From Monocercomonoides exilis PA203 (Eukaryota > Protista > Preaxostyla), in the NCBI GenBank assembly GCA_001643675.2, contig LSRY02000084.1, forward strand, positions 1-43,604: a stretch of 43,604 bases of DNA, given 5' to 3'. The translations under genes were made by a program, and so were the position numbers. Of this stretch, positions 33,153 through 43,604 are shown piece by piece. The stretch's first letter is position 1. Every line of letters starts with the position of its first letter. Under the pieces are notes generated by a model. The model saw only the letters and a program-made list of their open reading frames with translations, ran no database searches and was not told the origin of the DNA.

Positions 33153-34732
33153 AACGTTCGCTATTTTGGATGTCGGACTCGCGCAGAGCGTAAAATGAAG
33201 TTTCTTATCGTGATCTTTGTTAATATTTGATTACAGCTGTTTAATCATTTTCAATGATCTTTTGTATTATATTTGTATGCTTTCTAAATGATCAAAAAAT
33301 TTATTTTTCACATATTGAAATTTCAATCTATTAATAAATGAAATTATTTTTTAAGTATATCTCACAGTTAAGTGCTAAATATCAATGTCAAATTTTCATA
33401 AATATCTACTTATTGAAATATTTACACATTTTTATTTTTCTAAATTGTTCATATTTGTGGAAATTTTATTTGTTATACAATAATTCACTTATTTATTTTG
33501 TTTGAGTTTACGCAAAAATTTTTTATTCCAATCTGGTTAATTACGAAGTGTCTTTTTCAACAACTTTCATTCATTTTCAATACATAAATCAACGAAAAAT
33601 GTCACCTAATAATGATGTGAAGTCAGATAGAAAAAAAAATTTAACGATTAAAAATTGAATTTTTAACATAGAAAAATGGTTATGATCTAGATCAAACATT
33701 TTTTTTAAAAAATTTATATTTAATAAAGAAGAAGGAATTAGTGGTTGATGAAAAGTTACGTATATGGGTAATAATATGAGAGGAATTGATTGATATTAAA
33801 ATCAGAAATTAATTGATTCAAATTGTGGAATGATATGTTAAATAAAATTTTTTCTGTCAAAATTTTCATAATTATTTTTAAAATATCTCGATAAATAAAT
33901 TTTTCTAAGCCGTGAGACTTTACCAGAGTGTTAGTTGGACTATTTGTGAATTTTTGAAGTCAGGGTCAAAAATTCGAAAAATGAGAAATTTTCATTTTTT
34001 CTGATTAAGTTGAATTTAGCTCAAGTTATTCATAAAAATAGAAAAATTGGTGAAAATCGGTTTTTATGAAAGTTGTGATCGAAACTTATGAAAACACAAA
34101 AAGTTCGGATAATTCGCGAATAGTCCGCTGAATTTTTTTTTCGGGCCAGATTGGTCTGGTTAGAGAGAAAATGTCATAAGAATATTTTAACTGAAAAAGT
34201 GGTGATCTTAGATCAAGGACCGAAAAATATGGGGTCTCAGATTCCTTTGATAATTGGCAGGTGGCAAGGACGTGGGCCCCTTATAAACATACTCGAATCT
34301 AAATTTTTCTGTCGAGCGGTTGTGGCAGGGCAGTGCGGACAAGTTGGCCATTTTGACTGAAAAAATGAAAAAATTTTTTCTCGAAAATTTCAAAGTCGAT
34401 ATAAAATACGATTAAGCACATGAATACGACTTCTAATGTTGTATATTGACGATTTTTTGTTGGATACACTTATTTGTAGTTTTTGAGTTTTAATCGAATT
34501 TTTGAGTGAAAATGTTCATTTTTGAGGTAAATCGAGTATAACTCCAGAAGTAACAGCCAGATAAATTTGAAATTAATATATGATATATGTGCATATAGTG
34601 CGGTAAGAGCATGCATATGGGTGTTGGTGGTGGGGGTCTGGCAGGCGGTGCAGAAAAGAAATATATTTTTCATAGTGACTGGGGTGCTTGGTTAGTGAGG
34701 TCACAGAGAGTGAACCAGGGGCAAGTGGCTGA

Positions 34733-34794: not shown

Positions 34795-35049
34795 CGGCCC
34801 AGTGGTTGCTGAGAAATCCGATCGGCTAGTTGTTTTGAGTTCGGTTCTGATTTTTCACATAGAAAAATGACTTGGGGGTATTGACTTGGTGATGCTGTGG
34901 AGTGTGAGAGGAGGGCAAGTGATCGGAGTTAGAGGGATATGTTGGGGAATGTTAGTGGAGGTAGGATGTGGTGCAATTACTAAGAGATTGGGTCAGCGGA
35001 TATTCCTCCACACATCAATCAGTATAATTACTATTTGAAAATTGAATTT

Positions 35050-37320
35050 TTCTTTTATAATTTTTTTGAAAAATTTATTGCAATGTTAAACCTGCCATTC
35101 AACTTTTTATTGCATTGCTTATCATATTATTAAACAAACTTTATTACTGCAACATAAAAATCCACTTTCGATAAATTGCAAATAAATAATATTGATCAAA
35201 TCAAATTTTCATGTTTTAAAGATCCTATTTTGGAACATGTTGTAAATCAGTAATCTTCTTCGTCAAACAAAGTAAAATCATCGTGCAACTTTTCTTCAGC
35301 AACTTTTTAACACGTAAATCTTCTATTTAACAGCTTATAACTTTTGGACTTGCATCTTTTTCCATATATTTCAGTAATCAAATAATTTGTGAATGATGCA
35401 AAAAATGTTGATTGCATACTCAATGTGCACTATTTCCGGCTGCGCAAATAAACATTCTTCTATGACAAAAGCATTTCTTCTGACATTCTTCCATCTTTGC
35501 AAAGAAATTCGTCAAAAATAGTTTAAGATTATCTGCTCATTCAAACCATGAATTATGATTCAAATTGAGATCGCTTTCGAAATAAGCATATACAGTTAAC
35601 TTTCTTCAATTGTATTACCAGTTTGTAATATTTCATCTTTCTTTTTGTACATTATCTTTCTAATCATATAAATTACTATTATTTCCAGAGATTATCTTAT
35701 ATCAAAACATGAAACATTTTTAAATCATTTCTTTTCATTTTTATCTTGCTAATTCAATCTCATGAAAAGAAAAATTTTTCTTTTGTTGAGTACAAACAGT
35801 TTCAATAATTTAATTCATTGAAATTGTTTGAAAGCAGATAATATTCCAGTAACATATAAGCTATAAATAATAATTCATGATAATTTGCAAGCATATTCAC
35901 ATATTTTACGCTCAATAAGATTGGCATTGACTTTCAATTGAATTGTATCACTTTTATTTTGAATTCAATTACCAAGTTTCCGCTTCATTTGATAATCTTT
36001 AGTTTTCATTCATATTTAATGAAGAACAATATCTTTATTTCCATCATTAGAAACTTTCGCAAGTTATTCAATTTCGTTGAGAAAGTTATAAAACTTCATT
36101 TTTGTTTGCCAAACTCTTTATTTTTAGTTTTTATTTGTTTTAATATTTCGTTTCAAAAATGCTCAATAAGAAACATAACAATTATGAACTTTCACCGTTA
36201 AAACAATCGTAAATTGTTAACCTTCTGAATTTCATTTTCAGATGATGTTTTCACAGAATTTTAAAAAACAAATGAACGAAAATCTCATTCCAATAATGAA
36301 TCAAAATATTTCTGTATGCATCTTATTAAATTGGAGATATTAATGAACATTCTTTTCAAAAATTTATTTGAAAAAAGTGAAATTTCCTTTCATCCGATCA
36401 TGTTTTCCATTGTCAATTTATGAAAATGTCAAAAACCTTGCTCCTTCTTTACTAAATCTAACAAACACTGCAGTAATCTAGACTAAATGCATAACAAATA
36501 GTTGCAAAAGCTGATTAGTGTGCTTCTGTAAATTTACTCTGCTTTTAATCCAACAAATTTTTCCTCAACGAAAATCAATACTTGGCAAAAATGGAAAAGT
36601 TTTCATTGAAAATATCATTTCTGGATGCATGGCAAAGATCATTCCCAAGTATTCCCTTCAAGCGTGTTTGTTGTTTCACCGAAGTTGAACTTCTTCTTCA
36701 TGTAATTATCCATATTTCTTCTTTGACACGAACGTTCATAATCTTACTGATAATGACAAAGATCTAAATGAATTTGTATCAAACTTTATATTATGTGTTC
36801 ATGCTTTTTTGCTTATTTTCTTTGTTCAACTTTTCTCAGCGATGGATTTACAAAACTTCAATCTTCATCTAGTTTTGTATATTGCTTCCGCATTCAACGA
36901 AAAACTGAAACACTTCACCTTTCGATTTCAATTGTCATATCGCTTTTCTTTTTTGCAATAAATTTCTTTGCAATTAACATTTCTCTTTCAAAACAATAAA
37001 ATTATTAAACAAACCTTTCTAAATAGTCCACCTTTGTTAATAGATAATTCCTTTCGAAAAACTTTGTAAATAACACTAATTTATTTTGTTCTTTCCAGAA
37101 TTGAACGATTCCATCGAATTCCTTTTATTTGACAAGAAGCATTCAATTATTCTCTTTTGTTCATTCTTGACTGAACAAAATGATTGAATTTTCAATATTC
37201 ATCTGTGACGTATTTCATTTCTAAAATATACTTTGATTTTCTGTTCATTTTTAACAGAACCTTTCTCGAACAGTCAAGTTTTCCATTTCTTGCTTTTGAA
37301 AGTGTATGTAATATTTTCAT
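35050..37320 (-). pseudogene. Possible decayed coding relic, unidentified
   Basis: The minus strand is A-rich with protein-like stretches (SVKNEQK encoded twice near 37150-37260; VAEEKLHDDFTLFDEEDY near 35250-35305). The plus strand gives F/I/S-rich ORFs typical of antisense shadows. The minus frames I translated are interrupted by stops, and no family motif was recognised. Confidence 0.2.
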
Positions 37321-37402
37321 TGACAATATTTGATGTGAATGATAAAAATATTTAAAATGGAGCAAGCCTGTCAGCAGATTAATTTCAATAAAGGCAAAAA
37401 AT

Positions 37403-40135
37403 TCAATTTCCAGAACGTCTTTTCAATTTCTTCTCTTTGCAATTAACAACAGAAGAAGATGATGTTTTCTTTGACAACTCTTCAAGCGACTTCTTTTTCT
37501 TTGTGAACGAGTCCGATTTATTTCTGTAACTTGCACGGATTAACTCATCAGCAGCATTCAGATCTTCATCTTCGTCATCAACTATGCTTATCGTTAAATC
37601 ATTGTTCATCTGCTCATTATCGCAACACACTTCTTCTTCGTTTCTATCATCTTCATCGTCTTCTCTGCTGTCTTCGCATTTGATTTCCTTCCATTCACTT
37701 GAATCCGAGCAACTTTCAGAATCATCAACATCTTCGGATTCACTTGACTCATTTCTTTGTAAACTGCAGTCATTCGCATCATCCTTTATGACTTTTATTG
37801 CGTGAGTATTATTTTCCTTGGCATCGTTCTCATCCTCGTCATCATGTATTATTTTCAAACAATGCAACACTTCGTCCCTGGAATATTCTGGGTGCCTTCG
37901 CCACTGCTTCTTTTGCAAGTTTCGCCAACGATCTTTAAGATCCTGACCACTTCTTCCATCGAATTGAAGCGACATGTCGCACCATCTCATTTTTTGCTGC
38001 TTACACCTTCTGAGCAGCTCATCTTCTTCCTTTGTGAAGAATCTTCTTTTCTTTTGCTTCTTTTTCACCTTTATGGCATTGGAACTTGTGGAATTTTTGT
38101 TGTTCATAAGTAATCTATTTGGAAGTTGATACGGGTTGTCTGATATAACTTCAACAGATGATGGTGAAGAAGAAGAACTTGAAGTTGCACTGCTGGAAGA
38201 TTGTGTTGAAGATGATGATGTGCATTCTTGGTTTGATTGTTTTCCTTCTCCATCTGAGTTCGTGTTTGTGGATTCGCTCCCTTCAGTGTTTTCGCTTTGA
38301 CCCTGTGACTCTTCATCGGATTGTTGAATTGAGAGATCATTTTCATTTGAAGATGATGTGCAGTTGGATGATGCTTCTTGAGGGAAACTGCCTTTTAAAT
38401 CTAGACTGCGTCTCACAGGATAATCACTTAGATTAACAAAATCATCAACCAAATTGTCAAGATTAGCTAATGATTTTGACAATTTACAAACCACGTCTTG
38501 TCGAATGATTTTCATTCTTATCGTGTGAAAGTCATTTTCCTTCAAAGCTCTAAAAAAGACTTTTCTTTTGGTGAATGCACGCTTTGCTCTCAAGGAAAGG
38601 TTTTCGTTCTTGTCGATATAAGCTTTAGCACATTTCTTCCATTGGTTTCGAATTTCCCTTTCACCATCTTCCAAGTGCTTCATTGCATCATTGAAATGAT
38701 CATTCACTGCATTTCTAAATGTCTGAAATTGTTCTTTGATTGTTCTTTTTGGGTCTGACAACTTGATACTATGATATGCAGCGATAGAAGTTAGAGCCAG
38801 ATCTATTACAGTATCTCCAGGCTTGGGATTCACTAATCTGGAGCATACCGTTATTTTCTTGGAGGTATTTCTGACGTAAGTTAACTGAGCCCTGCCAAAT
38901 GGGACCCAGTCAGCGACGTAAGCAGTGTGTTCAAGTATCCCTTTAACTTTTTCATCTGTTCCGGCTACCATAATTGCAGTACAGATGAAGCCTGCCCTGG
39001 AGTGAAAAGAAAAAGAGTTTACAAGGGTACCCTGCTTGCTCTGATCTTTTTCTGAACCTTAAGGACATTGCTGCTGGGCTCATGTCCCACAGCTTTTTCG
39101 ACAACACATTCTTCGGCCACTTTTGTCTCGTTTTCAAAGATAGATGGTGGTTAACCTGCAAATGACGCTCAAGCCAATAAACAGGATCTCTGACTTGTTC
39201 ATGTAAGCTGGTATGAGCAAATCTTCCTTCGATCGTTACAGAGTGGTTAGAGTTTGGATGTCCCTTCAGCCTTCTCAATCTGATTTCAACCAAGATGCAC
39301 TCAGCGTGTAAATCCGAAATTGTTACGTTTTTAACATCCTCTAAAAAACGTTTGCACATGTAATTGACCTAGCTCCGCAGTGAACAGCAAATAGAAAAAG
39401 AGAACAATCAAAATCAAAAACATATTACCAGAATTGCTTCTTTCAATGATAAGGGCTACATCGTCAAGCAGTGCCGCTTCTTTTCCTTCTCCTTCCCTTT
39501 TGTAGCATCCGCTTTTTCTGACAGAAGAAAAAGCAGATCGAATTGTTAATTTAAGCTCACTGGAAAAGAATTCTTTCGTTTGTTGAAGATGTTGTGATTT
39601 TAAAGATGGAATGACAACATTTTCAACACTTTTAATAGAATATAAACATTCAATGCAGAGAAATTGAATGAATGAAGAGATTGTTGATGATTGTATTGGA
39701 AAAGGTTGGCTTTTAAGCAATTTCGCATATGGAACGTAAAGTTTTTCAGCCCATTTATATTTGCGATGGAGAGAAGGAGATAGAATTGTAACTTGTTGAG
39801 AATAACGTTGTAATGTAAGCGGTTTGCTTTTTTTTTAAGGTTTTTGTAATTTTGTCTCCTTTTGTTGCTATCCCGCATTCAGCAAAAACTCATCCCAGTT
39901 TGAAGGCATTTCGAAATATGGTTTGTCCAATTCTTCAGCTTCTTTATCTTTTTCAAATATCCCAAAAAAATATAAATTAACAAAAATGAAATCAACAAGA
40001 TAAATATGCAAACATAAATATAAAAAAACCTTCAAAATGATTGCTTTCAACCTGTTTCAAGTTGTCTAACTTCTTGGTTCGAATATTAAACAGCAAATGT
40101 TTTGATCGAGGTTGTCGAAAATTTAAATTTGACAT
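37403..40135 (-). CDS. Tyrosine recombinase fused to a C-terminal TRF/telobox-like Myb domain (YR-Myb copy 1; ~890 aa reconstructed across frameshifts and one probable intron)
   Basis: Joining ORFs 39868-40050, 39331-39720, 38952-39359 and 37403-38971 across small indels gives, in order: an N-terminal core-binding-like segment (PFPIQSSTISSFIQFL...YSIKSVENVVIPSLK); LFAVHCGARSIT (Arg, 39368-39370); IRLRRLKG (Lys, 39264-39266); DPVYWLERHL; FHS-RAGF (His 39002-39004, Arg 38996-38998, one residue short of HxxR as read); VADW (38906-38908); QLTYV (Tyr, 38876-38878). These are followed by a helical region, a Ser-rich linker, a basic NLS-like KKKQKKRR, the Myb repeat and an acidic tail. The start at ATG 40135 is tentative. 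Confidence 0.85.
37909..38047 (-). other. Single Myb/SANT repeat with telobox signature, inside YR-Myb copy 1
   Basis: RRFFTKEEDELLRRCKQQKMRWCDMSLQFDGRSGQDLKDRWRNLQK has Myb aromatic spacing (F...W...W). The recognition helix LKDRWRNL (37916-37939) matches the LKD(K/R)WR(N/T) telobox of TRF1/TRF2 and plant TRB/TRFL proteins. Confidence 0.85.
39963..40029 (-). other. Putative short spliceosomal intron in YR-Myb copy 1
   Basis: An open frame from ATG 40135 (MSNLNFRQPRSKHLL...SNHFE) runs into GAAG|GTTTTTTTATATT, a 67-nt very T-rich segment with an in-frame stop. It ends TTTTTTT-G|GG ATA TTT GAA, and splicing there keeps the frame into GIFEKDKEAEEL. A canonical AG acceptor needs one A that is missing from the read. 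Confidence 0.4.
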
Positions 40136-41966
40136 TTAAAAATGTTATTATGGGTTGTAATATTTTTAGTGTAATAATAATGAACAATTCCTGATAAATG
40201 AATACTTTAACAATTCATAAAAACTTTTAAATAAAAAAACTCAATAATTCATTTATCTATATAATAACAGTTTTTCTTTATTTCATTGGATTAATTTTTA
40301 TAAAAAAGTTCAATCAAAAGATTATGCAATTTGAAATAAATAAAGTTAATGGAAATGTGAATAAATAATATATGTCGCAATTCTGATGATTTTCGTCATT
40401 ATAATGCTTGTCAATTTTTGGTTAAATCAATTGAAATCTATGATTTAAATGAACTCGGTTCTTGAAAATATGAATATTTCAATATTACAAATATTTGATT
40501 TCGTAAATGAAAATCAATAATGAAATTATCAATTATTATTTACAATATTACAAAAATTTATTTTACAACCCGAAGGAATAAATTAATTAAATAACTATCG
40601 GATGAATTATGATATTTATTATTAATTGTGTTCTTTAAAATAATCCATTTTCTCACTCAATATTTCGTTCAAAATATAAAAGAAGCTTTTCTGACAAAAA
40701 ATAGACTTGTTAATCTCACTTGATTGCTTTTAATCGATTTTTTTCGTGCACTTTGCAAATAAATAAATATTTATTAAAATAATAAGTTTATTTCCATTCA
40801 AAAATTTTTCCAATGTTTTTCAATATCCCACCAAATATCAGAGATTTCGAAAAACAAATAATTTTTCCGTTGTTTACAATTAATGTCCTTCCTTTTCAAG
40901 TACACAGAAATTTTTCCAGAATTTTTTTATTTTTGTCATTTTTAACTTTTTCCATAGACTTTCAAATAGAAGAAAAATTGATTTTCTTTTAATTTTATTC
41001 TTAATTCTCACAAATCAAGATATCGTTTGAAAAAGTTCAAAGCAGCATGAAATAATCAAATTCACTATGTTTTCAACAATAAACATTATTATATCGATTT
41101 TTTACGAAAATTCAAAAAATACATTTATTCTAATAATTTCAGTCAAAGATATTATTCTTCAATATCTCAACGAATATGAGACAGATAAATTCTTTGATCT
41201 CATTGCTTTAACATTTATCTCATTGGCAGGCAATTGTTGCATTTATAGTTTCATTTATTAATCAATTATTTTCAAACAATTATTCAACTAGGTTATGTTT
41301 TCAGTCACTTTTCATATTGAAAAATGAGAATTCATATATTAATTTTTTTCGATATTCATTTGTTAAATCTATATGTCTTTAACATATATTACAGGCAAGG
41401 ATATATGCTGCATTAATGATTTTTCCTCCGCACAAATATAAATATTTACAAAATTATGTAAACTGAAGTATTTTTTCATAGAAATCATACATAGACAAAT
41501 TTTATGAAAAATCGAAAAATTCCATAAAAAATTTCCGAGTTTTCAGATAAAAAGTGATATTCGTTAATAACATGCAACGATATATTAGTACATATGGAAT
41601 TGGAGATATCATTCAAATAGTCATAAAAGAGGATTTTTTGCAAATTTGGAAAAAACACCAAAAATCGAAATTTTTGTTTTCGCAATAACTCGACAAATAA
41701 TGGTCATAACGAAATTCTGTTTCATGTGCAGTTAATCACATGACATATGTGAATATTTGATCACATCAAAATCGTTGTTAATCTCATTTTTAGAAATGTC
41801 ATTTTTCGACATGATACTAAAAGGTCACTTTTCGGATCAAAATTTTACAGAGATATGCAACAGATTCCAATAAATCATATTCCATACAAATAGCTACATG
41901 AGTGAATTAAACGTTCATAATGAAAATATTCTCCAACTCGATGCATAAAAGGGAAGAGTTGTAAAA

Positions 41967-42010
41967 CCTAACCCTAACCCTAACCTAACCCTAACCCTAA
42001 CCCTAACCTA
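41967..42010 (+). repeat. Interstitial telomeric tract (~8 units), same orientation as the terminal telomere
   Basis: CCTAA CCCTAA CCCTAA CCTAA CCCTAA CCCTAA CCCTAA CCTA, lying between the two recombinase genes. Confidence 0.96.
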
Positions 42011-42314
42011 GTTTAAATACAATTAAACTTCGTCTTGTGGAAACAACAAAATGATGTTATTTTGAAGTGAAAAAGAGTGCGAAGATTTTGTTTCTCCACT
42101 GTGAATGTTAATGCATCAAAGAAGAAATTGCAATAATTCAAAATAAAGAAAGATAAAATCAATTTCACAAACCTTGTTCATATGTGCAACATGGTGCATA
42201 TAAGAAGTTCTCACAAAAAGTTCATGATTAATCTCCAGCTTTCAAATTGCGTCCTTGCAAAAGATTGAATCATCACTTTGGCTGTCCACTTCTTTCATCA
42301 AACCACTATTGATA

Positions 42315-42427
42315 TCTCTTCTCTTCTTCTCTTTCTCTCTCATTCTCTCTCATTCTCTCTCATTCTCACTCTCACTAACTCTCACTCTCTCTCGCTGACT
42401 CTCTCTATTCTCTCTCTCTCTCTCTTT
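42315..42427. repeat. Degenerate (CT)n microsatellite with (CTCTCTCATT)x3
   Basis: Pyrimidine tract tctcttctcttcttctctttctctctcattctctctcattctctctcattctcactctcac...ctctctctctctctcttt, just downstream of YR-Myb copy 2. Confidence 0.85.
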
Positions 42428-42471
42428 GCAGATCTTCTTCGTTAACAGATTAATGATGTTCAACTATCGCA

Positions 42472-43604
42472 CTATTGCTTTGAACGAGATGTATTCCGCC
42501 TCAAGTTCATCAAGATGCCACTGCTTTCCTTTGCTTTCTCATTTGTCAATTGTTTAATAATGTTCCTTACACGGTCTCTACACGAGTTGGCTGATCTTAT
42601 TTTCAGTTTTTCTCCAATATCTGCAAATGATTTCCCATCCATCAATTCTTTTATCAAAATATCGTCTTCCATTCTCGTCCAATGAATTCTGGATTTGCAA
42701 TTTGTTATTGGATTTATTGTTCTTTCCTCTCTAAGTTTTTTTGGCTCAAAATCTTTAACATCCAATATGATCTTTCCATCAAGATAGTCATCTATTTGCG
42801 ATAGGAATTCGTTTGCAATATCAATTAAATCTCCGCCACTGGTTTTAACGAGTTGGAGAACATACTCTTTGCATGCTTGAATAGTGGTTTGAGTCTTTTT
42901 CTTTTTATATCATGTTCCTTCATAAACTTTGTCGCCGCCATTGAATGCAATTTGGATACATAAGAAGATGGATATCCAAGTTTCCAGCAGGCGAATTTTA
43001 TTACTTGCAAAATATAAAACCTTAAAGTGACTATTATACTGTCTATCTTCCATTCACTTTGGTTGATTTTCATATTATGGAAAACCTCCGGCTTTGATAG
43101 ATCAAAGTCATACGGATTATCGCTTTCCAGAACATCACTTGGAAAGTTTGTTCTGTTTGCAATGATTGTAGCTTTGGAAGTCCTATTGAGGTACTTCTCC
43201 TCAGTAGGACCTCCAAACTTCCATTTTGCTATTATAGAGGCAGTTTCCAGCACGCTTTCTCTTTTGTATGGGCTATCCCCTATTTTGAGCAAAGCTGAAC
43301 ACAGAAACGGAGCGAAAAGAATGGAATCCAAAAAGCTTCTCGGGATAGCCTGCCTGTTTTGCCCTCTTCTGTATCCTTACCCTCATGGCACCTTTGCGCA
43401 AGCCCCACACGTTCCCACCCCAAATCCTTTAGATTCCATTCATCAAATCGAGTTAACGAAAGGCCAAATTCTTGCACTAAGTATTGTTCAAACCACCATA
43501 TGAAATTCAAGCTGCTTTTTGAACAAATGTCCCCCTCAGGGTCACGCAATGGTCATCCATTCTAATGTTTTTGCCACACACCAAATTGAAAGTTATCTTA
43601 AGAA
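42472..43604 (-). CDS. Second tyrosine recombinase-Myb fusion (YR-Myb copy 2), 5' part beyond the window
   Basis: Joining ORFs 43280-43549, 42825-43331 and 42472-42765 plus the intervening frames gives HCVTLEGD...NFIWWFEQYL...WGLRKGAMRVRIQKRAKQAGYPEKLFGFHSFRS(G)FLCSA (HSFR at 43312-43323), IAKW (43221-43223) and EEKYL (Tyr, 43191-43193). It ends in a Myb repeat IHWTRMEDDILIKELMDGKSFADIGEKLKIRSANSCRDRVRNI (~42553-42690). Colinear with copy 1. Confidence 0.85.

Follow-up and report, generated by a model that had tools for sequence, protein, structure and literature searches.

Several systems are known in which units are stacked head to tail at chromosome ends, with a defined proximal junction and an eroding outer end; they include TRAS/SART, HeT-A/TART and the yeast Y' elements, the last with short telomere tracts between the units. 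TRAS/SART and HeT-A/TART use a reverse transcriptase (RT), and Y' encodes a helicase and spreads by recombination; to our knowledge, none of them contains a tyrosine recombinase (YR) or a Myb domain. Cryptons, as Goodwin, Butler and Poulter reportedly described in 2003, are DNA transposons with a YR only. Kojima and Jurka (2011; PMC3212892, as cited in PMC6681497) are likewise a source for Crypton DNA transposons, and some fungal members add a C-terminal DNA-binding domain, GCR1_C (PMC3537659). The YR retroelement TATE occurs in Leishmania braziliensis as tandem clusters whose position within the telomeric hexamers is fixed (PMC6681497). Mobile elements targeted to telomeres are known mostly as retrotransposons, and a DNA-based case was reported only in 2026, namely the Helitrons of Paramecium aurelia, which have co-oriented telomeric repeats on both sides, an absolute strand bias, stacks at germline chromosome ends and internal telomere tracts (PMC13085455). 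Tel-1 of Tetrahymena (Cherry and Blackburn 1985, as cited in PMC13085455) is mentioned there in a passage that does not give its coding capacity.

The elements described below, in which a YR is followed by one Myb repeat, look like an undescribed Crypton-like family of telomere-specialised mobile DNA, because telomere repeats, one of them of a different type, are also where relatives from other microbes are located. No published family with this architecture was found in the searchable literature, in line with the initial annotation of the locus. The family annotates dozens of 'hypothetical proteins' of Monocercomonoides exilis, a model amitochondriate, and part of the 35 % 'unclassified repeats' in its genome (PMC8767320). 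The likeness to Cryptons (a single YR gene, a length of a few kb, no RT and no long terminal repeats) is one of architecture, and the Crypton-derived domains DUF3435 and DUF3504 had no Pfam match in the family. In contrast to Cryptons, the extra domain is a Myb repeat, and the site is telomeric repeats or chromosome ends, with fixed polarity. As in the TATE/VIPER-like elements of kinetoplastids, a YR-bearing element is clustered in telomeric repeats; however, TATE has RT/RH, terminal repeats and an RNA route, whereas the YR-Myb elements have one open reading frame (ORF), a Myb repeat and no RT. With the Paramecium Helitrons and, as far as the cited description goes, Tel-1, they share the form of DNA elements that lie between co-oriented telomeric repeats, stack and create internal tracts, although the Helitron enzyme is a Rep/helicase and not a YR. 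Stacking at ends, a defined proximal junction and an eroding outer end are shared with TRAS/SART, HeT-A/TART and Y'.

The locus and its two gene copies

The window is the whole stretch analysed, 43,604 nucleotides of contig LSRY02000084.1 (C85 below). Between positions 37403 and 43604 its minus strand carries one full gene and one gene truncated by the contig end, each with a YR core and then one Myb repeat (Table 1). The initial annotation had proposed this architecture for both genes, and it is confirmed by profile matches in copy 1 and copy 2 and by the single ORF of many intact paralogues. It had also described both genes as pointing toward the telomere, with a short co-oriented telomeric tract between them, as is indeed the case: both lie on the minus strand, with the terminal array at the left end of the window, and the tract is a run of CCCTAA units. 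The pair is not, however, directly inside the chromosome end as had been stated, but 35-41 kb in, behind a satellite array.

Table 1. Features of the window and their coordinates.
Feature	Position	Strand	Remarks
Terminal telomere array (CCCTAA)n, left chromosome end	1-2324	+	ONT-type homopolymer noise; variant units, including CCTAGTTTGAA at 116-126
353-bp subtelomeric satellite array	2319-33129		87.6 copies, 30.8 kb; between telomere and elements
Fragment of family element	33884-34330	+	84 % identical to 3' non-coding region of an element of the 1205-aa type (L037:6961-7400)
Duplicated block	34936-42014		99.5 % identical to contig C83; parts 99.3-99.5 % identical also on C59, C43 and C31
Copy 1 gene, YR core and C-terminal Myb	37403-40130 (upper limit approximate)	-	Frames broken by assembly indels
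Copy 1 Myb repeat	37874-38038	-	Helix 3, DLKDRWRNL
Copy 1 catalytic box II (H-x-x-R, W, Y)	38860-39010 (approximate)	-	
Copy 1 5' non-coding region	40131-41966	-	AT-rich; 5' terminus (TTTTACAACTC...) adjoins spacer
Interstitial telomeric tract (spacer)	41967-42010	+	44 nt, about 7 CCCTAA units; same orientation as terminal array
AAACTAGG motif at spacer start (G-strand reading)	42007-42018	-	
Copy 2, N-terminal part cut off by contig end	about 42019-43604	-	
Copy 2 3' UTR	42019-42471	-	
Copy 2 Myb ORF	42472-42765 (Myb at about 42562-42684)	-	PF00249, E 6.5e-6, above gathering score
Copy 2 YR, C-terminal half	42825-43549	-	Family YR profile

In copy 1, a 522-aa ORF at 37403-38971 holds the end of the YR domain and the Myb repeat (Pfam Myb_DNA-bind_6, E 1.9e-4, residues 312-366), and the upstream YR pieces are in other frames. 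Its twins read as ORFs of 533/534 aa and 395/396 aa, and the leucine codon of HSLR, absent from the window copy, is present in all four twins. Five copies on other contigs are 99.3-99.5 % identical, and nearly all their differences are short indels, most of them in homopolymers: indels account for 31 alignment columns and substitutions for 8. Short-read contigs have extra bases where the window copy has gaps. The frameshifts are mostly assembly errors. Introns can be ruled out as the source of the frame changes, since the twins have long uninterrupted ORFs and differ by indels that are short or lie in homopolymers. In copy 2, the ORF at 42825-43331 aligns with positions 291-432 of the family YR profile (probability 99.7, E 5.7e-26) and that at 43283-43549 with positions 214-256 (E 3.8e-12). 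The frame pieces of both copies were searched separately, not joined, and intact paralogues were used for whole proteins.

Homology between C85 and C83 runs up to the inner boundary of the telomeric spacer and stops precisely there, and the spacers on the two contigs are nearly equal in length. Judged from the sequence comparison, copy 1 of the window spread when a subtelomeric block, 7 kb or more in length, was duplicated, and not as a single-element insertion.

The recombinase-Myb protein family

In intact paralogues one ORF of 830-1260 aa encodes the whole protein, and in many copies the YR and the C-terminal Myb lie in it without interruption. The elements are about 3.5-5 kb long and have one gene each, which encodes a variable N-terminal region, core-binding and catalytic YR domains and one C-terminal Myb repeat. 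The catalytic residues R575, K608, H692, R695, W726 and Y736 (numbered as in L038:3933-6884) show little or no variation in an alignment of 11 paralogues, and the R-K-H-R-W-Y hexad is kept also in a second alignment of nine; the paralogues in these alignments are only 20-59 % identical. A structural check of the YR assignment had been proposed at the outset; with an AF2 model made from the family alignment, Cre, XerA, XerH, IntI, XerD, lambda Int and Flp occupied all of ranks 1-50 in a Foldseek search of the PDB (probability 0.93-1.0, best E 7.7e-5, about 340 columns), the mean pLDDT of the model being only 67.6. A sequence search of the PDB with the YR part returned weak Cre matches only (E 0.2-1.5). 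Against Pfam Phage_integrase (PF00589), L038 scores 21.4 bits, the cutoff being 27.1, and P0103, a relative from a metagenome, exceeds it with 36.2 bits. A word search with a single protein (L038 residues 1-984) gave no match, low-complexity words probably swamping it; profile searches did work. On these alignments and the model, the family protein is a tyrosine recombinase with a predicted two-domain, Cre/Xer-like fold. Both domains are under purifying selection, with Ka/Ks at 0.06 (YR core) and 0.18 (Myb).

The initial annotation had noted that no RT is visible around copy 1. Pfam scans gave no RT or RNase H match in the family, and the complete units L038:3107-7249 and L082:155-4084 consist of one ORF each; nor were LTRs, TIRs or split direct repeats present in the three units checked, in which the only terminal direct repeats are the flanking telomere tracts.

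It had been suggested that the Myb repeat is of the 'telobox' kind. This is not supported for the family, whose Myb profile scores higher against Trichomonas MYB21 (TvMYB21, 26.1 bits) and c-Myb (24.9 bits per repeat) than against TRF2 (22). The repeat of copy 1 gives 28.0 bits with TvMYB21 as against 18.9 with TRF1, and that of copy 2 matches Reb1 and c-Myb, with no TRF match. Helix 3 is not conserved: it varies (DRWRN, DRIRN, DHIKH, DHIQV and others) across subfamilies, all of which are telomere-associated, and a telobox-like Myb is seen only in the copy 1 lineage and in L090.

Chromosome ends, junctions and competing explanations

There are at least 75 family matches in the M. exilis genome. 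The expectation that homologues would be concentrated at chromosome ends is borne out, 70 of the 75 lying no more than 60 kb from a contig end, spread over 47 ends; chance is therefore excluded (binomial P about 4e-52, with 14.7 % expected). Fifty-one point toward the end and 19 away from it, and the orientation is consistent inside each subfamily.

Junction anatomy was compared at about 25 loci. The elements are stacked, and their centromere-side end is a defined terminus that adjoins a telomere tract of 10-80 nt; these spacers are uniformly short, as against terminal arrays of 2-3 kb. One 5' terminus is shared after telomere tracts at different loci and in different subfamilies. On C25 two 4.14-kb copies, 99.9 % identical, lie one at each contig end, with both termini equal and different flanks. 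Many outer ends are truncated, at differing positions, and capped by seeds of 11-16 nt. Since the spacers are so short and the outer ends truncated and re-capped, the stacking would involve erosion and telomerase healing, possibly with tract-mediated recombination, and not simple insertion into long arrays. The earlier idea that successive insertions stack the elements is thus only partly upheld: there are stacks with short co-oriented telomeric spacers, but copy 1 spread by block duplication, and erosion and healing are also involved. Assembled contigs of older DNA runs contained no circle junctions, empty sites or polymorphic insertions, it being understood that these are contigs, not reads, in which circles cannot be judged. 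Among RNA runs, none was found to contain the sequence.

About half of the tracts start with a telomerase-type restart motif, AAACTAGG. An 11-nt unit, TTCAAACTAGG, is scattered within the terminal arrays of many chromosomes; the motif occurs in graded lengths, from CAAACTAGG down to CTAGG, behind unrelated sequences; and a template-like string that matches it is found in one single-copy internal locus, a candidate telomerase RNA (C13:635000-635390) for which an Rfam search gave no match. The motif at the junctions is probably a telomerase product and not an element end, and that at the start of the window's spacer probably marks where telomerase restarted when the outer end of copy 2 was healed. 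For the same three reasons (the scattered unit, the graded lengths and the template-like string elsewhere), AAACTAGG was rejected, as the main reading, as a conserved 3' terminus of the element.

We think it probable that these genes belong to a large and diverse family of single-gene, Crypton-like DNA elements, mobilised by their YR and living in the telomeric repeats and ends of M. exilis. The recombinase would move the element as DNA, probably via a circle as in Cryptons, and one defined element end would be joined to a telomeric repeat by the YR, with polarity fixed in each subfamily. The inserted element would become the chromosome end, its outer part exposed to erosion; telomerase would then re-cap the eroded end, often beginning with the unit (C)AAACTAGG, and the next element would land on the new tract, leaving the short spacers. 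Whole stacks would also be copied between ends by recombination, copy 1 of the window being such a copy. The Myb repeat may guide integration as a sequence-specific tether, its target being either duplex telomere DNA or the CAAC-bearing terminus of the element itself. If this is correct, YR elements that carry a Myb domain would have come to inhabit telomeres independently, by a third route. The family offers a testable system for the way in which a site-specific recombinase reads a telomere, for the assembly of subtelomeres through rounds of erosion, healing and the arrival of elements, and for the question of whether the maintenance of ends is aided by such elements or exploited by them. Several observations sit less easily with this reading. 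Many outer ends are truncated and capped by short seeds, the more distant relatives L108 and L109 have no telomere tracts, and the Myb domain is not specifically TRF-like. Uniformly short spacers are not what random insertion into arrays would give, and five copies of copy 1 in one block that breaks at the spacer are what Y'-like, tract-primed recombination alone would be expected to produce.

An alternative, which we regard as unlikely, is a Y'-like subtelomeric gene family that is not, or no longer, autonomous; once ends had been eroded and healed, its units would be copied to other ends through break-induced replication or gene conversion that starts in short telomere tracts, the YR-Myb protein being a relic or having a host telomere function. 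The exact end of the C85/C83 homology at spacers of nearly equal length would fit it, as would the five near-identical copies at a similar distance from the end, the satellite between element and telomere in the window, the constant shortness of the spacers, the truncated and healed outer ends and the restart motif. However, recombination can copy junctions but does not create the first junction between a telomere repeat and a defined element end. There are, moreover, many deeply diverged subfamilies (20-30 % identity), all with the full catalytic hexad and a Myb under purifying selection, and each with its own polarity and its own defined terminus beside telomere repeats; the 4.14-kb unit is discrete, with both ends defined in two different contexts; and the architecture occurs also in unrelated hosts with another telomere repeat.

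It is much less probable that the elements are YR retroelements of the DIRS/VIPER/TATE kind, whose RT has been lost or is supplied in trans. TATE offers a precedent in the telomeric hexamers of Leishmania braziliensis (PMC6681497), and the nearest ESM Atlas clusters include proteins with ALOG and Phage_integrase, of the DIRS1 type; but in the complete units between telomere tracts there is only one ORF, neither RT nor RNase H gives a match, and the termini show neither inverted nor split direct repeats. Elements of either polarity are truncated only at their telomere-distal side, and so erosion fits and incomplete reverse transcription does not. That the locus is an artefact of assembly, the 43.6-kb ONT contig being noisy and redundant, might be suggested by the many indel errors of the window and the short twin contigs C85 and C83. 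This is already contradicted, to the point of being negligible, because the family occurs on 41 contigs, some of them megabase chromosomes, as well as among the gene models of M. exilis at NCBI, in short-read contigs and in unrelated metagenomes.

Relatives in other hosts

The YR-Myb architecture recurs in unrelated hosts beside the host's own telomere repeat, with two repeat types represented. A tentative extension of the reading as mobile DNA elements is that YR-Myb elements are a widespread, unrecognised superfamily of DNA transposons with a telomere niche, tracking the host repeat (TTGGGG for ciliates; TTAGGG for other protists, oxymonads among them), attached through a single defined terminus to tracts that are short or newly forming, building chromosome ends together with telomerase and perhaps supplying the coding identity of elements of the Tetrahymena Tel-1 type. 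Because TTGGGG-flanked YR-Myb contigs were found, Tel-1-like elements may, by analogy, be of this kind. The more distant relatives L108 and L109 have no telomere tracts. TTAGGG or CCCTAA flanks are present in six metagenomic relatives (L082, L085, L086, L090, L091 and L099). In four contigs that use the ciliate code (L095-L098), YR-Myb units of 3.2 kb stand in tandem and the flanks are (TTGGGG)n; on these contigs one element is followed by three different neighbours.

Two gene copies and their domain composition

The window makes up all of contig C85 (43,604 bp), which belongs to an ONT assembly of 82.3 Mb in 101 contigs (PMC8767320). The unique sequence of the window is the last 10 kb, where two genes combining a tyrosine recombinase (YR) with a C-terminal Myb repeat are found; both are broken, and their frame pieces were searched separately. 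In copy 1, the final ORF (522 aa) covers the closing part of the recombinase domain plus the Myb repeat, the upstream recombinase parts being spread over other frames. In copy 2, the Myb repeat scores above the Pfam threshold and two ORF pieces match the family profile (positions 214-256, E 3.8e-12; positions 291-432, E 5.7e-26). Both copies are oriented toward the telomere and a short co-oriented tract lies between them, as the initial annotation had described; its placement of the pair directly inside the chromosome end needs correction, the distance to the terminal array being 35-41 kb.

Coordinates of the window features and of loci discussed in the text (L, extracted locus; C, assembly contig)
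Feature	Location	Strand	Remarks
CCCTAA repeat array	window, first 2.3 kb		ONT-type homopolymer noise
Satellite array	window 2319-33129		unit 353 bp; 30.8 kb; 87.6 copies; 96 % matches; directly inside terminal telomere
Copy 1	window 37403 to about 40130	minus
Spacer between copies	window 41967-42010		about 7 CCCTAA units; co-oriented with terminal array
Copy 2	window 42019-43604	minus	N-terminal part lost to contig end
CAAC(T/G), examples	window 41950-41966	minus
	L032:2088-2115
	L033, just inside 8326	minus
TTCAAACTAGG in terminal arrays	window 116-126; L038:1-3110; L037:7968-10000; L043:6600-10000
Common 5' end	L033 and L039; L035 and L025
Common 3' end	L031 and L040; L013 and L038
Cut ORF	L043 at 3274 and 6600		capped directly by telomere repeats
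Copy truncated within ORF	L038 at 7250		preceded by 12-nt tract
TTAGGG or CCCTAA flanks	L082, L085, L086, L090, L091, L099
(TTGGGG)n flanks	L095-L098		JGI Ga0194111, Ga0194116, Ga0194126, Ga0194128
Receptor-kinase-like ORFs	L035:6210-8573 (C76)
Candidate telomerase RNA	C13:635000-635390 (L089:250-640)	plus	single-copy internal locus; contains TAACCCTAACCTAGTTTGAA

Five copies of the copy 1 gene (C85, C83, C59, C43 and C31) are 99.3-99.5 % identical and differ in 31 indel columns, mostly homopolymers, versus 8 substitution columns; short-read contigs of the same organism have extra bases at sites missing from the window. Both observations argue that the frame breaks are mostly assembly errors. 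On C59 and C31 the gene is two long ORFs (533/534 and 395/396 aa). Copy 1 lies in a block that spans at least 7 kb (34936-42014). The homology of this block to C83 breaks off precisely at the spacer, and C85 and C83 have different neighbours on its inner side. The other four copies are 15-39 kb inside their contig ends.

Elsewhere in the Monocercomonoides exilis genome, each intact paralogue is one ORF, 827-1263 aa long, and family proteins are exact matches to NCBI entries named 'hypothetical protein MONOS_...'. The residues R, K, H-x-x-R, W and Y are invariant and in canonical order among 11 aligned paralogues (20-49 % identity to the first), and the catalytic residues are likewise invariant in a trimmed alignment of nine. 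Pfam Phage_integrase is sub-threshold in one M. exilis paralogue and above threshold in the metagenomic relative P0103. When an AlphaFold2 model built from the paralogue alignment (mean pLDDT 67.6) was compared with the PDB by Foldseek, the first 50 matches were all tyrosine recombinases (Cre, XerA, XerH, integron integrase, XerD, lambda Int or Flp), with about 340 aligned columns, probabilities up to 1.0 and a best E of 7.7e-5. Among ESM Atlas clusters, the nearest contain Phage_integrase, in some cases plus ALOG.

Almost all members have just one Myb repeat, close to the C-terminus and within the recombinase's own ORF, and the proposed fusion is therefore sound. The further proposal of a telobox domain is not established, since TRF proteins score below c-Myb and Trichomonas MYB21. 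The family profile gives 24.9 bits with a c-Myb repeat, 26.1 with MYB21 and 22 with TRF2; copy 1 gives 28.0 with MYB21 and 18.9 with TRF1; copy 2 matches Reb1 and c-Myb best and has no TRF match. Helix 3 also varies, from DLKDRWRNL (copy 1) through CRDRIRNI to DDHIQVLI, all in telomere-associated subfamilies. Judged by sequence, the domain is not specifically TRF-like. Of 16 distinct ends, 8 (ciliate-type ones among them) have a c-Myb-type motif, CAAC(T/G), no more than about 25 nt from the 5' terminus, and the Myb domain might thus be a reader of the element's own end; alternatively, it may recognize the telomere.

Placement at chromosome ends and structure of the stacks

A genome profile search scored 75 of 207 candidates, giving at least 75 family matches. 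As the initial annotation had anticipated, these are concentrated at chromosome ends: 70 are no more than 60 kb away from a contig end, a zone comprising at most 14.7 % of the genome (P about 4e-52), and 47 within 20 kb. They occupy 47 distinct ends on 41 contigs; 51 face the end and 19 face away from it, orientation following subfamily. The few internal copies scored are full of stops.

Junctions were compared at about 25 loci. On the centromere side, with the telomere read as TTAGGG, each element is bounded by a telomere tract of 10-80 nt and then a defined terminus, so that stacking with short telomeric spacers is confirmed; termini recur across loci, even across protein subfamilies. On the telomere side, elements are often truncated. 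Of four compared copies of a 1205-aa subfamily, three are cut, each at a different 3' position, and behind each cut come a seed of 11-16 nt and the 5' end of a new element; the fourth (C45) extends beyond all three cuts. Truncation is always distal, regardless of element polarity, which fits end erosion plus healing. There are discrete units all the same: two 4.14-kb copies (99.9 % identical), one at each end of C25, have both termini in common and different flanks on either side. Units have only one long ORF each, and neither LTRs nor TIRs were found in them.

Paralogues C24 and C37a have an overall Ka/Ks of 0.16, with 0.06 for the YR core and 0.18 for the Myb domain. The same two ORFs (L032 and L039) have diverged in a mosaic fashion: Ks is about 2 for the YR core, against 0.13-0.42 for the Myb domain plus C-terminal tail, which suggests that elements have recently exchanged 3' parts. 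Separately, receptor-kinase-like ORFs that lack introns and encode a transmembrane segment adjoin subtelomeric elements on C76; this agrees with a report that the tyrosine-kinase family is expanded in M. exilis.

Relatives, precedents and mode of spread

A HMMER search of 1.84 billion representatives returned 235 proteins at E <= 1e-30. The named proteins among those looked up are all from M. exilis, the remainder coming from metagenomes and run assemblies. Telomere-type tracts lie beside the gene in 10 of the 22 non-M. exilis contigs examined, many of which are too short to judge; they are absent from two more distant relatives (L108 and L109). The four loci with TTGGGG flanks have long ORFs only under the ciliate code, and then comprise units of 3.2 kb in tandem, every one of them an intact YR-Myb gene; one element has three different downstream neighbours. 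Between the units lies (TTGGGG)3-5, and Myb helix 3 reads VRERARTLKL in four diverged paralogues. These units may be linked to the 'internal telomere' elements Tel-1 of Tetrahymena.

The best reading is that the family consists of Crypton-like YR-Myb DNA elements specialized for telomeric repeats and chromosome ends. Stacks would be built by repeated rounds of insertion, erosion and telomerase healing, and recombination would copy entire stacks from one chromosome end to another. Neither circles nor polymorphic insertions were seen in the assembled contigs. The main rival is a Y'-like family whose present spread occurs solely by tract-primed recombination. It accounts for short spacers and block duplication, but leaves unexplained why many diverged subfamilies retain a recombinase that looks active, why discrete units have both ends defined, and why the family recurs next to another telomere repeat in ciliates.

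Partial precedents for YR-Myb elements exist. TATE, which sits in telomeric hexamers (PMC6681497), shares the YR and the telomeric location but is a retroelement; Helitrons of Paramecium likewise insert into telomere repeats (C4A2), in a study that also discusses Tel-1 (PMC13085455). The word 'recombinase' is absent from both M. exilis genome papers, and 35 % of the assembly is unclassified repeats (PMC8767320). A full-text literature search found no such elements described; most subscription journals and Repbase Reports lay outside its scope, and an earlier description is possible.

A motif at tract starts and a candidate telomerase RNA

Many tracts start with (C)AAACTAGG. This was considered as a conserved 3' end of the element and rejected as the main reading on the basis of scattered array units, end-bound counts and graded lengths. 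The motif follows unrelated sequences, and the 11-nt unit TTCAAACTAGG is dispersed in the terminal arrays of many chromosomes, sometimes doubled, about once per few hundred bp and at positions that differ between telomeres. The terminal array of the window also has many CTAGG(G) units. There are 231 occurrences of AACTAGGTTAGG, nearly all at contig ends and in G-strand orientation, versus 28 of a reversed control.

A locus on C13 is a lead for the telomerase RNA. About 300 comparatively GC-rich nt lie 3' of TAACCCTAACCTAGTTTGAA; the locus folds better than 100 of 100 shuffles (z = -4.2) and has no Rfam match. If the locus does encode this RNA, exactly TTCAAACTAGG would result when the stretch immediately 3' of the canonical template is copied, and the motif would mark telomerase (re)starts, that is, healed ends. 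At an internal site on C12 (L088, C12:553301-554000), AACTAGGTTAGGGTG is followed by the tRNA-T-arm-like GGTTCGATTCC; taken with L087, this site has the look of an internal remnant left by either a healed end or an element junction.
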